Positions 12,801-18,238 of a stretch of 64,000 nt of DNA are shown piece after piece (within the stretch, counting starts at the first letter, position 1; every line of letters begins with the position of its first letter). Position numbers and translations under genes: made by a program. The stretch is from Auanema rhodensis (lineage: Eukaryota; Animalia; Nematoda), in the NCBI GenBank assembly GCA_964057225.1, contig OZ059897.1:12028001-12092000 (forward strand), in the 5' to 3' direction. Below the pieces are notes generated by a model. That model was not told the DNA's origin. It made no database searches and saw only the letters and a list, made by a program, of their open reading frames with translations.

Positions 12801-13941
12801 TTTGTATTGTGTTTCGGAACTATTTAATGAAGCTGTTGATAAGGCTTTAGAGGTTGAAATTATCTATACTTCGAGAATAGGATGTCGTGATTTAGATTAA
12901 ATTAGACTTAGCAAAAGACTGTGCTAGGTTGATGGACGCTGATGTTGATGATATAGTATTAGGATTAGAACCTAAATATTCAAAAGAAGATAGAAAACGT
13001 ATTTGGTTAAAAATAGGTATTTTCCTACGTTAATTATATTATTTCTATCAATTTGTTTCCAGCAAAAAATGTTATTGAAAAGGAAAAAGATGCTGCGAAG
13101 TGTATCGATCTTCTTAAAGAATCAAATAATGCTATTTCTATCCAAGATATATTTCCATATTTCCCGGATTTTACAAAGATAGAACATTTCAAAGATGCTT
13201 TGTGTGACTGTTTAAAAGATCACTCGAAAAGCATTTTGGTATAAAGTTTTCAGTTGATTCCATAAACCTTATGAATTTTCAGGAAATTCAGCAATCACTT
13301 AAAGAAGCTACTCAAGTTGCTCAAGAAATACGAGAAAGAACTGATCGATTAAAGAACAGGTTTATATGATAATTATGTCTTCTATCTTATACCGTATTTG
13401 AATTAAGGGTAACTATAGTGAAAGCTGGTGATGTATGTGCTGTTTGTAAGCACTCATTAGCTGGCAGACCGTTTTATCCATTTAATTGTCGTCATTTCTT
13501 CCACAGAGAATGCTTAGAAGAATCAGCGAATGTATTTTTATCTTTGGTATGTCGTAGTTGTCTTAGCTTATGATGTATGCTTGTAATATCTTAAAGGAAG
13601 ACCGTCAAAAATTAGCGGACTTGATCATTCGAGAAAAACGAGTTCTTGGGCAGATTGAAATTGAAGAGCGGTCACCTGGTAAAGGAAGTGCTCTTGCTGG
13701 TTTGAAAAATATTCATTTCTCGCAATATAATTCACGTTACAGAAAGAGAAGCTCGATTTCGGCAGATTGTTGGTGAAATTGATGACATATTAGGCACTGA
13801 TTGTCCTTTGTGTGGAATGATGGCAATTGAGTGAGTGCTTTGAATATTTACAATATTAAAAAACATTTTTTCAGTTTGATTGATACACCGCTTTTCACAG
13901 ACGTAGACTATGCTGATGATCTAGATTCCTGGCGAATTTGA
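9819..13941 (+). CDS. vps-18: Vacuolar protein sorting 18 (HOPS/CORVET core subunit)
   Basis: HMSPTGFHAF, ISAVGWN...TGPILLGS, LTEFH, DEGRYVWRYFLD, LVIWLLEVQLSEL, IQDIFPYFPDFTKIEHFKDALCDCL and a C-terminal RING (CAVC...FNCRHFFHREC...DCPLCG). Stop TGA at 13939-13941. Confidence 0.95.
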
Positions 13942-14097
13942 AAAAATACAATAATTTTTAAACATTTTTTTTGAATTTCTGGTCAGAAATATGTGATATA
14001 TACATATTAAATTATTTTTTAATTTTATGTGTTCAAGGTTTTCCTTAGCATACTGCAATATATCACTACACAATATAGTAGGCCCTTTTTTCAGTCG

Positions 14098-16355
14098 ATG
14101 TCTAACGAGCATTGGAAGTTTGTTTGGCCTTCCGCACCAGCTTTAGGTTTCTAACCTCTGCAGATTATTTCAAGATTATCTTTTTTTCTCAGCAAACTTC
14201 CTCGCATTAAATCGACAAATTTTCGAGAATTCAACAATAGTAGAACTAGGGGCTGGCTGTACGGGTTTGGTTGGTTTATCAGCTCTGAAATTAGGCGCGA
14301 AGAAAGTTATTTTAACTGAGTATTCTGGACATTTAGAAGTATATATTGTCTAATAATATATTCCAAAGACTATTACTTAAGGCATTAAATATTCTAAATC
14401 AAAATGTTTCAAGAATCAAAGATAGCTTAAGCTCCGGTCAAGAAGTTGAAGTTGTGGTAGGAATTTTAGTTCTTGTTGCTAACATGAATTCCTTAACAGG
14501 GATTAGATTGGTTAACCTCATTAGAACCTCATTACAATGATCCTGGAAATATCAAGGAATTTCTCTCTACTCTCGAAGACTGTGATTTCATATTAGCTTC
14601 TGATGTTTTTTATGAACCTTCCCTGTATAGATCACTGATGCGGACACTAGCCATGTTCATCGAAAAATTCCCTCGACTTAAAATTTATTTTTCATATCAT
14701 TTGAGAGAGTTCGTTTCTTCTTAATTTATCACATGCGTTTAATCGATTTATGAACAAACCTGATAACGAAACACATTGTTTTAAATATTTCAGTGAGAAT
14801 CATTCTATAGAACATTTACTATATATTGAAAATTTGGAGTGTCATCTCATAAGAACCGTGGAAGAAGCCGGTACAATCCAGATAGGTGTCATTTATCGAA
14901 AACTTGATTCAAGCATGTCTATCCATGGCGGAATCGAAGGGTATTTTATTTATTTCATTTATATATATTTTTTCTTATTTGTAGAGGAGCAACTCATTCC
15001 AAGTTAGTGCTCTTTCATCGAGATGGTAAACGTTCTGAAGATATACCTGGTCCTGGTACCAATATGCTTCTGAATGGTCAGTTTAGTTTGCAAAATGTAT
15101 TTCTTACTAATTGCTTATTAGGGTTGGAAATTACGGCAGATAGCATTGCTTCGTGGGTTCGAACTGCTAGCAGCGAACATTCTATTTCACTTCCTTTAGA
15201 GACATTGGTTTGCACTTCTTGATCTGTTTTTCATAGTTTTTTTTCTAAAGGGGTTAGGCCTTTCTGGAGCTGAAGATGATCTTTTGAATGAAAAATTTGT
15301 TCAATATTTAACTGAAAACCATGGAGATATTGCGAAACACTTTTCTTTGTGTTCCGATTCTATTGGTACCATTCAGGCAGCTTTTGATAAAGGTATGGAA
15401 TTCAGTAGTTATTATGTCCGGTTACTGAAAAAATTGCAGAAGGAGTTGTTATTATTGCTGGTACAGGATCCAGTGTGAGAATGCTTCGCGAAGATGGATC
15501 TGCTCATGGAGTCGGCGGTTGGGGCCATATGATTGGTGATGGAGGCAGTGGTTTTTGGATTGCTCAAAGGTTCGTGTTTTGATCTAAATAAGTTTTTTAA
15601 AATCGTTATTTTAGAGCTATTAGGGTTATTTTTGATCATGAGGATGGATTAGAAGAATCTGCAGAAGACATTACTCTATTGAAAAAATGTTTCTTCGAAG
15701 TAAATATATTTGACATTAATAATTACATCTCATACTTTCAGTATTTCAAACTTCAAGATAAAGTTGGTATTCTTGATCACCTGTACTCGAACTTTGAAAA
15801 GCCAAAGGTAGCTGCATTCACTTCCGTGCTTGCGAAAAGTGAGACATTTTTAACATTTTTGAGATTATATTATAGTGTGGAAAACGTGGCATTTCCTTTT
15901 CTGATAACGAATTCTATTTATAAAGTATTACAGATTCTCATGATCCCGCTATTCAAAAGATTTTTTATGATGCTGGTTTCATTTTGGGAAAACAACTAGC
16001 TTCACTATCTCATAAAATGAGCGAGGTTTTCTATATTATTGTATATTTTACGATTTCTGTGTTAAATATAGAAAATGAAATCATGTTGTGATATTGTTAC
16101 TGTGGGTTCTGTATTTGGATCTTGGAGTATCTTGAAACCTGGTATGCTATATCATGCAGTTTTGACATTGTTTTGGTTTTTTTAGGGTTTGTAGATGCTG
16201 TCAAGATATCTGATATCAAGAAAATTCGGCTGTTTACTTGTGATGAAGGTGTTTCAATAGGTGCTGGTTTATTGGCCATCAAGAAAGCTGGAGAAACTGT
16301 AGAGTTTGAGAGAAAAACTACAGTATATGAAGAATTATATTTTGATAAAAACTAG
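14098..16355 (+). CDS. Fusion: METTL23-like (Methyltransf_16) methyltransferase plus N-acetylglucosamine kinase (NAGK)
   Basis: N-terminal part: FVWPSA, IVELGAGCTGLVGL, GLDW, DFILASDVFYEP. The exon 14794-14940 continues without a stop into MSIHGGIEGGATHS, then GLGLSG, SDSIG, AGTGS and GGWGHMIGDGGSGFWIA (NAGK). Stop at 16353-16355. Confidence 0.85.
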
Positions 16356-16555
16356 TTGAATTGCATTATTTTATATAAAAAATTTTTTGAAACACTATTA
16401 AGTTATTTATTAATTCTCAATTTAAAGAGACAGCTGTATAAATACATCTCATAACATCTATACAACAAAAATTATTTTTGCCACAATCCCGAGATATTTT
16501 GTTAGAATAAGAAATGCACTTGTCGATGAGAAGTTGTAAGCGATGGGCGTATCAT

Positions 16556-18238
16556 TTAACACCTGTAGCTACTTTTAGTGTTGCAAAATACAAAGGCTGA
16601 AAGCATTGTAGAGAGCAGAATGGAAAGCGTTAAGAAGAAAGAGAAGTAGAGGGGGGATAAGCAGAATCCCATTGGCTCAGGAACTGAAGTAAGAGCAGCA
16701 GGAGTTTGAAGGTTTGGTTGCTCTTCCTGAAATGATTAATTATTGAAAAAAATTACATTTTCATGCAAGCAGCATACCCCGTCCAAGATTTCAAGAGTAG
16801 TCAATTCAGCTCTAACGTCTAATACAGCTTCATTGTCAACAGCTCTCTTCTTGAGTAAACGAATGTTAGCTGAGGCTGCAGAAGTTGTAGCAGCTGGAGG
16901 TGCTGCGGCAGGACCTGCAGCAGCTGGAGCAGCGTTGGCAACAGGAGCTGGAAATAGTTTTATTTAATAATTTAAAATTTCTATTCTTGGAACTATGCTG
17001 ATAATACTAACCACCACCGTGCTTAATAGCTCCAAATCCTTGTGGTTCAGTGCATTGTGGTCTTGGGCATTCAGTGTTGGGATCCTGTTAAGATAAATAT
17101 TGAAATAGTTAAACTTTATCATTAAAAATACCTTGATTGTAATACTGATTTGACATTGATAGAATAATTGTGATCTATAATGGATTGATTAATTCGCTGA
17201 TTTATAGTATAGAAACGTACCTATCCGCATATTTGTAAACGTGAGCTTCTTGCCCAGCCATCAAATCAGTAGGATATTCCAAGTTGTTGAGCAAGAACTT
17301 ATCAAGAGCGCAACCATCCTCGTTCAAGATTTGAACAGTATCACCATTTCCATCATCAACCGTGCAAGAATGTACAACAGCGCAGAAGGTGTCAGTGGTT
17401 TCGGAATCGCAGGTCCACTTGTGATAAACCTGTTGACCGATGGTAGCAAACTGAACTGGTTGTCCAGTTGGTCCACCTTCGAGAATCTCGTATTTACAGA
17501 TTGGCATAGGTACAACCTGAGATTATTGTTTACAGATCTATGATATCCATCAGCAAACTTACTTGTGTTTGGAAAGCTGTGGTAAGCTCAGATACTTCGA
17601 TTTGAGTTGAGACTGTCTTGTCGGACTCCATGTAGAAGCATTGGATACGGTAAGCTCTGAGGTGTTGTTGATAAACTTGAAAGGATTATCTCTCCTACCT
17701 GTCAACCTTGGTAACAAATTGAGGATGGAAAGAGATAACAACAGTAGTTGTCACAAAGATTCCTCTTGGATTGAGAGAACGAGTACGAGCAGTGTTACAA
17801 CTATCAAATGGAACTTCCATACCAGCAACCTGGACACAATTAGTTCGATATTATATCAAAGAAGTTGCGTAGAATTACCTGTCGTCCACCTTCATCACTA
17901 CGACATTCTTGGTGATCAAATAAGCCTTTAACATACACATGTCCTTCAAAAGGATTTCTAGTATTGAAGTTCACAGTAATTGAGCTAGGTCCACATTCAA
18001 CCTGAATACGTTTATAGTATACTGAATGTTTATCATTTCGGATAATTAGTTCAGTTTGTGTTTAGTTTTAATAGGTCAAAACACATAAATAAAGAAAACA
18101 TTAAAAGAAATAAGAATATGTTTAAGCATATTAAAGTAATATCAACTATGCTTATACCTCAGGTTCTCCTTCAACTCCGTTATCTACAGGAATACCATAA
18201 AGAGGAATAACAAGAGATAGAAAAATGAACAATCGCAT
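16556..18238 (-). CDS. cut-1: ZP-domain cuticlin (cut-1/cut-3 type)
   Basis: Signal peptide plus [66 protein letters not shown], Ala-rich AAPAAA repeats, an LLKKR furin site and a C-terminal TM segment. cut-1 versus cut-3 orthology is uncertain. Confidence 0.88.

Follow-up and report, generated by a model that had tools for sequence, protein, structure and literature searches.

A family-16 methyltransferase and N-acetylglucosamine kinase joined in a single Auanema rhodensis gene that belongs to a nematode fusion family

N-acetylglucosamine kinase (NAGK) is found as a stand-alone protein of about 340 amino acids in vertebrates, arthropods, molluscs, cnidarians, sponges and the dorylaimid nematodes Trichuris and Soboliphyme. 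METTL23 is a methyltransferase of family 16, and its substrates are poorly defined. In C. elegans, W06B4.2 was named NAGK (bioRxiv 10.1101/2020.03.04.977595), and F22B7.9, which is a different gene from the one described here, was given as the orthologue of METTL23, a disease gene in humans that is cited for intellectual disability (PMC11208049). We analysed a stretch of 64,000 nucleotides (nt) from the nematode Auanema rhodensis (assembly GCA_964057225.1, contig OZ059897.1, positions 12,028,001 to 12,092,000; referred to as the window), in which a methyltransferase and a kinase of these two types lie in one reading frame, as an earlier note on this DNA had proposed. We found that 14098-16355 is one gene encoding one protein, not two genes, and that the protein known elsewhere as stand-alone NAGK forms its C-terminal half.

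The gene model was obtained by fitting GT..AG introns to positions 13800-16700 of the window, which is AT-rich as a whole (GC 31.5%). The fusion gene has 14 exons on the forward strand, from an ATG at 14098 to a stop codon at 16353-16355, and its product is 529 amino acids long. Its introns are all of the GT..AG type, with 11 of the 13 measuring 42-47 nt and the remaining two 85 and 95 nt. The parts of the gene are as follows.

14098-14146, 14193-14338, 14382-14456, 14500-14708 and 14794-14940, forward strand: exons 1-5 of the fusion coding region
14985-15076, 15122-15207, 15251-15392, 15440-15569 and 15615-15699, forward strand: exons 6-10 of the fusion coding region
15742-15838, 15934-16025, 16072-16141 and 16186-16355, forward strand: exons 11-14 of the fusion coding region
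14098-14903, forward strand: Methyltransf_16 module, residues 1-196, from exons 1-4 and the first 110 nt of exon 5
14794-14940, forward strand: junction exon of 147 nt, with the methyltransferase C-terminus, the linker and nine kinase residues (MSIHGGIEG)
14904-14915, forward strand: linker LDSS, four residues between methyltransferase and kinase
14916-16355, forward strand: N-acetylglucosamine kinase module (BcrAD_BadFG, ASKHA fold), residues 201-529

The two modules meet inside the junction exon, which translates as ...ENHSIEHLLYIENLECHLIRTVEEAGTIQIGVIYRKLDSSMSIHGGIEG, is free of stop codons and lies between an 85-nt GT..AG intron upstream and a 44-nt GT..AG intron downstream. The earlier note was exact in having this exon run from the methyltransferase through LDSS to the start of the kinase without a stop. 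The final beta-strand of the methyltransferase module is TIQIGVIYRK; LDSS is followed by MSIHGGIEGGATHSK, the kinase N-terminus with its phosphate-1 loop, and the kinase continues from there to the stop codon. The peptide segment across the fusion junction thus reads ...LDSSMSIHGGIEGGATHSK. Judged from sequence, the kinase ATG at 14916-14918 (M201) is the ancestral initiator, kept within the fused frame.

Transcription across this junction was investigated with assembled RNA contigs from four runs of one study (X1 to X4), which were compared with 2901 nt around the gene. The four runs contained about 47% of the sampled words, the proportion expected of spliced RNA, and all 13 introns were seen spliced out as GT..AG joints. 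Contigs of 1528 nt (X1), 1572 nt (X3) and 1520 nt (X4) extended from exon 1 or 2 to exon 14, and a contig of 642 nt (X2) extended from exon 4 to exon 9. In all four runs, contigs crossed position 14915 with more than 31 letters to either side, and these contigs had no mismatched letters, indels or loose ends at the junction. Moreover, no AATAAA-like poly(A) signal was found within 14384-15287. Since the contigs bridge both modules unchanged and no such signal precedes the kinase ATG, neither the polyadenylation before the kinase nor the indel or stop at the linker that the earlier note had named as fatal to the fusion was observed. The reading of the locus as two operon genes mistaken for one was therefore rejected, as neither a stop nor a poly(A) signal was found between the modules, the contigs bridge them and the junction is conserved. 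Retention of intron 4 would truncate the methyltransferase at 164 residues; the joint that removes this intron was present in all four runs.

A further splicing event was seen inside exon 4, in one contig of X2 only (depth 2.2). This contig lacked an alternative GT..AG intron of 49 nt (14582-14630, forward strand), whose removal deletes the DVFY motif region and shifts the frame, so that translation would end after 119 residues; we take it as probable splicing noise or a probable target of nonsense-mediated decay.

Both halves of the product carry the motifs of their families. The six motifs named by the earlier note were all located in the 529-residue model, namely VWPSA (9-13), ELGAG (34-38), DVFY (125-128), GGATHS (209-214), AGTGS (322-326) and GGWGHM (341-346); within residues 1-196, the longer forms ELGAGCTG, LTE and ASDVFYEP were also found. 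Single exons were sufficient for Pfam matches, to Methyltransf_16 in exon 2 (E 1.4e-5) and exon 4 (E 7.8e-4) and to BcrAD_BadFG in exon 9 (E 2.2e-5), and exon 2 alone scored 25.3 bits for Methyltransf_16 against a Pfam cut-off of 21. Among 38 fused sequences, the methyltransferase motifs E34-x-G36-x-G38, T58-D/E59, D93-W94 and D125-x-F127-Y/F128 were invariant or nearly so. A. rhodensis has E34-L-G-A-G38, T58-E59 and D125-V-F-Y128, position 59 being D in 34 of the 38. The kinase motifs G206-I-E-G-G-A-T-H-S214, D304, G323-T-G-S326, G341-G-W-G-H345 and D349 were invariant or at least 90% conserved in the same set. Because the S-adenosylmethionine-binding, DxxY/F and kinase motifs are invariant or nearly so, both halves are under purifying selection, and the proposal that both modules keep their catalytic motifs was borne out.

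The kinase half has, on this comparison, the full sequence of an N-acetylglucosamine kinase. Residues 195-526 of the A. rhodensis protein were 36-39% identical to vertebrate and invertebrate NAGKs, with E values down to 1e-70, and residues 198-526 of the orthologue from Auanema sp. JU1783 (P0004) matched human NAGK (2CH5/2CH6; E 1e-45) from chain residue 3-5 onwards, so that the human enzyme is covered over its whole chain from the native N-terminus. GIEGGxT/SxS, N235, D304, GTGS and GGWGH..D of animal NAGKs are all conserved in the fusion. We take the roles of these motifs (phosphate-1 loop, catalytic Asp, phosphate-2 GTGS) from general knowledge of the ASKHA fold.

The methyltransferase half belongs to family 16, with a Pfam Methyltransf_16 score above the cut-off and the motifs of that family, namely the ExGxG motif I, an acidic post-I residue and DxxY/F. 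Solved family-16 enzymes (METTL21A/C, CaM-KMT) were matched weakly (best E 7e-6 to 1e-4). In the ESM Atlas, the clusters nearest to it were named METTL23, with 0.93 for language-model features and a template modelling (TM) score of 0.84 for structure, values that barely differ from those of the EEF1AKMT3, METTL21 and EEF2KMT clusters. A word-index search with the methyltransferase domain alone (P0004:1-195) gave zero matches and was uninformative. Thus, the family-16 part of the earlier assignment stood on the Pfam result, and the name METTL23-like, taken from the nearest Atlas clusters by a narrow margin and with F22B7.9 as a rival orthologue, is a reasonable label for the putative enzyme. 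The module begins right at the xVWPxA motif, as the short human METTL23 isoform presumably does.

We then searched for relatives, using exon pieces and the Auanema sp. JU1783 orthologue as queries in the large collections and the 529-residue model for local BLAST and MAFFT. With exon 4 as the query, a profile-free search of 1.8 billion representatives gave 20 matches, including full-length proteins of 581 and 519 amino acids that were matched at 91-158 and that both have PF10294 followed by PF01869. The ten matches that were identified as family-16 by look-up or Pfam scan all came from nematodes, and several of the remaining ones are long proteins with repeated short matches. PF10294 was detected in the orthologues P0004 (E 5e-14, 52.8 bits) and P0007 (E 5.5e-21, 75.5 bits), and PF01869 in P0007 (E 1.8e-27). 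Word-index searches with the two full-length matches found proteins with both domains in about 35 named nematode species. In Rhabditina, these are Auanema, Mesorhabditis, eight Caenorhabditis species including C. briggsae (CBG13487), Haemonchus, Ancylostoma, Nippostrongylus, Heterorhabditis and Pristionchus; in Spirurina, Ascaris, Toxocara, Anisakis, Syphacia, Wuchereria, Dirofilaria, Acanthocheilonema and Thelazia; in Tylenchina, Bursaphelenchus and Meloidogyne, and Ditylenchus as well; and in Plectida, Plectus sambesii. A species-specific or recent fusion is ruled out, as Plectus, Spirurina and Tylenchina carry it. The architecture, on whose occurrence in other nematodes the earlier note had been undecided, is shared across Chromadorea.

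The corresponding ESM Atlas cluster has 61 members, all from Nematoda, with both domains in about 90% of them, and the source databases name most fused proteins N-acetyl-D-glucosamine kinase. By these sequence matches the fusion is an old family known to databases and is not peculiar to A. rhodensis; because it is already public for so many species, we do not regard it as a discovery about this genome. In the word-index searches, Trichuris trichiura, Soboliphyme baturini and every non-nematode match had the kinase only, which agrees with the earlier statement that the two enzymes are separate genes in vertebrates and extends it to the other animals found. C. elegans W06B4.2 was not among the matches listed in these searches. 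The NAGK gene of Trichuris trichiura (L001:10001-11038) is an uninterrupted, intronless open reading frame of 1038 nt, and chromadorean fused genes have 10-18 exons; no methyltransferase or vps-18 neighbour was found at the Trichuris locus.

Residues 1-526 of the A. rhodensis protein aligned to fused proteins (P0004, P0024, P0026, P0034 and others) at 36-48% identity. The identity was 47.7% for Auanema sp. JU1783, 44-46% for Ancylostoma and C. bovis, 44% for Ascaris and 38% for Plectus, and no protein more than 50% identical was found in the collections searched. The fused proteins of Auanema sp. JU1783 (P0004), C. briggsae (P0099), Ascaris suum (F1KYW5, P0034) and Plectus sambesii (A0A914WEN1, P0051) have the same domain order as that of A. 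rhodensis, a similar length (about 500-550 amino acids), a short linker and similar motifs. In a tree of the kinase domain, from which partial or duplicate models were left out (P0028, P0032, P0033, P0037, P0041, P0044, P0048, P0052-54, P0059, P0061 and P0098), the nematodes formed one clade (99*), and A. rhodensis was sister to Auanema sp. JU1783 (98*) inside Rhabditina, in agreement with the accepted nematode phylogeny. Given the shared gene structure, the shared neighbourhood and this tree, the A. rhodensis gene is orthologous to the fusion family and not convergent.

Models with one domain only were also found in Chromadorea. The kinase-only models adjoin near-identical fused proteins in the tree (Brugia by Wuchereria, Necator by Ancylostoma) and, because of this nesting, look like annotation fragments. 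Stand-alone methyltransferase models from Strongylus, Ostertagia, Heligmosomoides, Necator and Angiostrongylus were rejected as unfused genes: the models are short, some of them come from small contigs or carry a partial mark, and P0010 and P0019 continue into kinase sequence. Two tylenchid models look like gene-model errors around the fused locus, namely P0011 (UniRef A0A915EE77, 960 amino acids), in which a glycosylphosphatidylinositol (GPI) ethanolamine-phosphate transferase is joined to the methyltransferase domain, and P0013 (Ditylenchus destructor, 323 amino acids), in which a long odd linker leads into the kinase start and then a stop. In Dirofilaria immitis (L006:10001-20555), Thelazia (P0043) and Loa loa (P0054), the models continue for 240-270 residues past the kinase, with a zf-RING_5 domain at the C-terminus; this extension reflects either an additional fusion in Spirurina or a model merged with the gene downstream. 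We rejected it as a trace of linkage to vps-18, since this RING, which is not that of vps-18, is C-terminal to the kinase and since neither Dirofilaria nor Toxocara has vps-18 upstream.

The junction was compared among the fused proteins by alignment. In nearly all of them, the last methyltransferase strand is followed by 3-10 residues and then by xFAGIEGGATxS, and only Meloidogyne has a longer linker insert. About two thirds of the fused orthologues retain a Met at a distance of 3-8 residues or less from GIEGG. The old kinase Met was lost in Auanema sp. JU1783, in contrast to A. rhodensis, and also in Pristionchus, Bursaphelenchus, Meloidogyne and Elegans-group Caenorhabditis. A junction exon of 49 codons with identical flanking intron positions is shared by A. 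rhodensis, Auanema sp. JU1783, Pristionchus pacificus and C. angaria, and the linker intron is absent from Mesorhabditis belari too. Toxocara, Dirofilaria and Bursaphelenchus have a phase-1 linker intron 9-11 codons before GIEGG, with its acceptor 1-3 codons before the old Met position (1-2 codons before the Met in Toxocara and Dirofilaria). At the corresponding place, C. briggsae has a linker intron of 840 nt in phase 2. A. rhodensis thus differs from Spirurina and Bursaphelenchus, as well as from C. briggsae with its intron of another phase, in having no intron in the linker.

In nematodes, a splice acceptor just upstream of an ATG is typically a trans-splice site. The phase-1 linker intron persisting in Toxocara, Dirofilaria and Bursaphelenchus suggests how the two genes were joined: the neighbouring methyltransferase gene probably began to splice in cis into a 3' splice (trans-splice) acceptor lying immediately before the NAGK ATG. 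We read the absence of the linker intron from the five Rhabditina genes as loss; an intron lost later from most Rhabditina would have left the seamless 49-codon junction exon of A. rhodensis, Auanema sp. JU1783, P. pacificus and C. angaria. On parsimony, we infer a single origin of the fusion, no later than the common ancestor of Plectida and Rhabditida. As a separate observation on C. briggsae (L002:9124-9975), the acceptor annotated for the 840-nt intron, ataag/C, lies 12 nt upstream of a perfect consensus site, TTTTTTCAG/C, which is also in-frame. The C. briggsae model may therefore include four codons that are really intronic, and the consensus site may also serve trans-splicing.

Upstream of the fusion gene, we observed a forward-strand gene with Pfam matches to Pep3_Vps18 and RING, whose stop codon is at 13939-13941. 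The region between the two genes is made up as follows.

13942-14094, forward strand: 3' untranslated region of the vps-18-like gene and intercistronic spacer, the spacer being about 90-115 nt
14086-14097, forward strand: predicted spliced-leader (SL) trans-splice acceptor ttttttcag/TCG, 3 nt before the ATG

RNA contigs of the vps-18-like gene ended at 13981-14005, and the depth over 13994-14090 was 0-1.7. The fusion-gene contigs of X1, X2 and X3 all started at 14093, at the AG of ttttttcag/TCGATG, leaving 52 letters ahead of the first joint. Such a gap, about 90-115 nt in length and with a perfect acceptor 3 nt from the ATG, is classical nematode operon spacing, and the fusion gene would accordingly be the second cistron of an operon behind vps-18. 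We infer, from a predicted acceptor, that the fusion gene is trans-spliced, no leader sequence having been seen in the contigs. A vps18 gene lies directly upstream on the same strand in A. rhodensis, Auanema sp. JU1783, C. briggsae, C. angaria, Mesorhabditis, Pristionchus and Bursaphelenchus, and among the neighbour genes examined it was not the upstream neighbour in Dirofilaria or Toxocara. Downstream, a cuticlin-like (CUT_C / ZP-type) gene on the minus strand (16489-17510) converges on the fusion gene. The very deep RNA contigs at 16489-16700 (up to about 3570 in X3) were taken as its 3' end. Auanema sp. JU1783 has cuticlin genes at the matching position and in the same orientation, so that synteny between the two holds on both sides, with vps-18 upstream and cuticlin downstream. 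In C. briggsae, a gene for a hAT-family transposase (Dimer_Tnp_hAT; L002:4192-6482, minus strand) lies within the span of the vps-18 orthologue and is presumably intronic.

As to why the two enzymes are joined, it is quite conceivable, if short of an even chance, that the fusion was neutral: two unrelated enzymes that were operon neighbours would have lost the stop and spacer between them and stayed joined because re-splitting is unlikely, with no coupling of their activities. Each half has its own full motif set, as expected of independent enzymes, all other animals found encode the two in separate genes, and in the literature searched we found no paper that links METTL23 with NAGK or describes the fusion. 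However, the joined state was kept across the Plectida-Rhabditida divergence with a linker of 3-10 residues in nearly all lineages, and no reversion to separate genes was confirmed, the unfused chromadorean models having the look of annotation fragments. The predicted structure also speaks against neutrality, since an AlphaFold model of the Auanema sp. JU1783 orthologue (31-row alignment), with a mean predicted local distance difference test score (pLDDT) of 91, a predicted TM score (pTM) of 0.83 and a confident linker, suggests that the two halves form one compact body and are not two beads on a string.

The locus might also have a dual output, giving the fused mRNA plus a stand-alone kinase through SL trans-splicing at ttgattcaag/cATG (14906-14918) or through initiation at M201; the fusion would then partly behave like its ancestral operon. 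We consider this unlikely. The Met kept near GIEGG in roughly two thirds of fused orthologues would suit it, as would the real intron acceptors just before the kinase Met in Toxocara and Dirofilaria, the NAGK-only gene models for Brugia, Onchocerca and Setaria, and the use of A-at-minus-3 acceptors (cttaag, ctaaag) elsewhere in the fusion gene. However, the AG before the kinase ATG comes without a U-rich tract, and no contig break, loose end or second form was seen at 14915 in the four runs. Moreover, since several lineages have lost the kinase Met, as listed above, the family does not depend on a separate kinase. That two genes only appear joined because a stop or spacer was lost through assembly or sequencing error is refuted by the RNA contigs, which equal the genome exactly across the junction in four samples, and by the alignment, with its stop-less junction in about 35 independently sequenced species; nothing was found in favour of such an artefact, and we give it practically no credence.

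We thus put the probability that the locus is one gene with one mRNA and one METTL23-type methyltransferase–NAGK protein of 529 residues, in which the four-residue linker connects a complete seven-beta-strand, S-adenosylmethionine-dependent methyltransferase with a complete kinase, at about 0.9. Several points weigh against this reading and against the history proposed for it. Assembled contigs of one study cannot prove single molecules spanning the whole gene; they hide rare isoforms and do not show the ends of single molecules. The fused product is known from RNA contigs and sequence, and at the protein level it is predicted. The single origin and the splice capture are parsimony arguments from nine gene structures, and C. 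briggsae, whose linker intron is in phase 2 and not in phase 1, may have gained it separately. Finally, the high pTM of the AlphaFold model may come partly from the short linker rather than from a co-evolved interface, and the ESM Atlas model of the same orthologue had a pTM of 0.55.

For the fused protein itself, the best reading of the sequences is that two independent catalytic modules would be joined for obligatory co-expression. Two active sites would lie side by side on one rigid polypeptide; the kinase half would phosphorylate N-acetylglucosamine (GlcNAc) for salvage to UDP-GlcNAc, the methyltransferase half would methylate a protein substrate, and the fusion would secure 1:1 co-expression and proximity. 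There is a real chance of cis-regulation or automethylation between the halves. The couplings put forward earlier, in which the kinase is methylated, GlcNAc is sensed or modified sugars are made, are speculation. Family-16 enzymes are known as protein methyltransferases, which makes methylated sugars the least likely of these. A bolder idea is that the conserved partner or substrate of METTL23 is NAGK or a hexosamine-salvage protein, so that nematodes would have hard-wired an interaction that occurs in trans elsewhere. We think this improbable; if it were true, methylation would tune GlcNAc salvage or the non-metabolic roles of NAGK in animals generally.

For A. rhodensis, the analysis provides a checked 14-exon model at a locus where the closest sequenced relative is merely 48% identical. 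The wider value lies in the family and not in this copy: a tight fusion was kept across the divergence of Plectus and Rhabditida, and the family appears to be undescribed in the literature searched. The pattern of linker introns offers a clean example of neighbouring trans-spliced nematode genes merging by splice-site capture. Moreover, a conserved fusion partner is a cheap and testable hint to the function of METTL23, and C. briggsae, a tractable species, carries the fusion.

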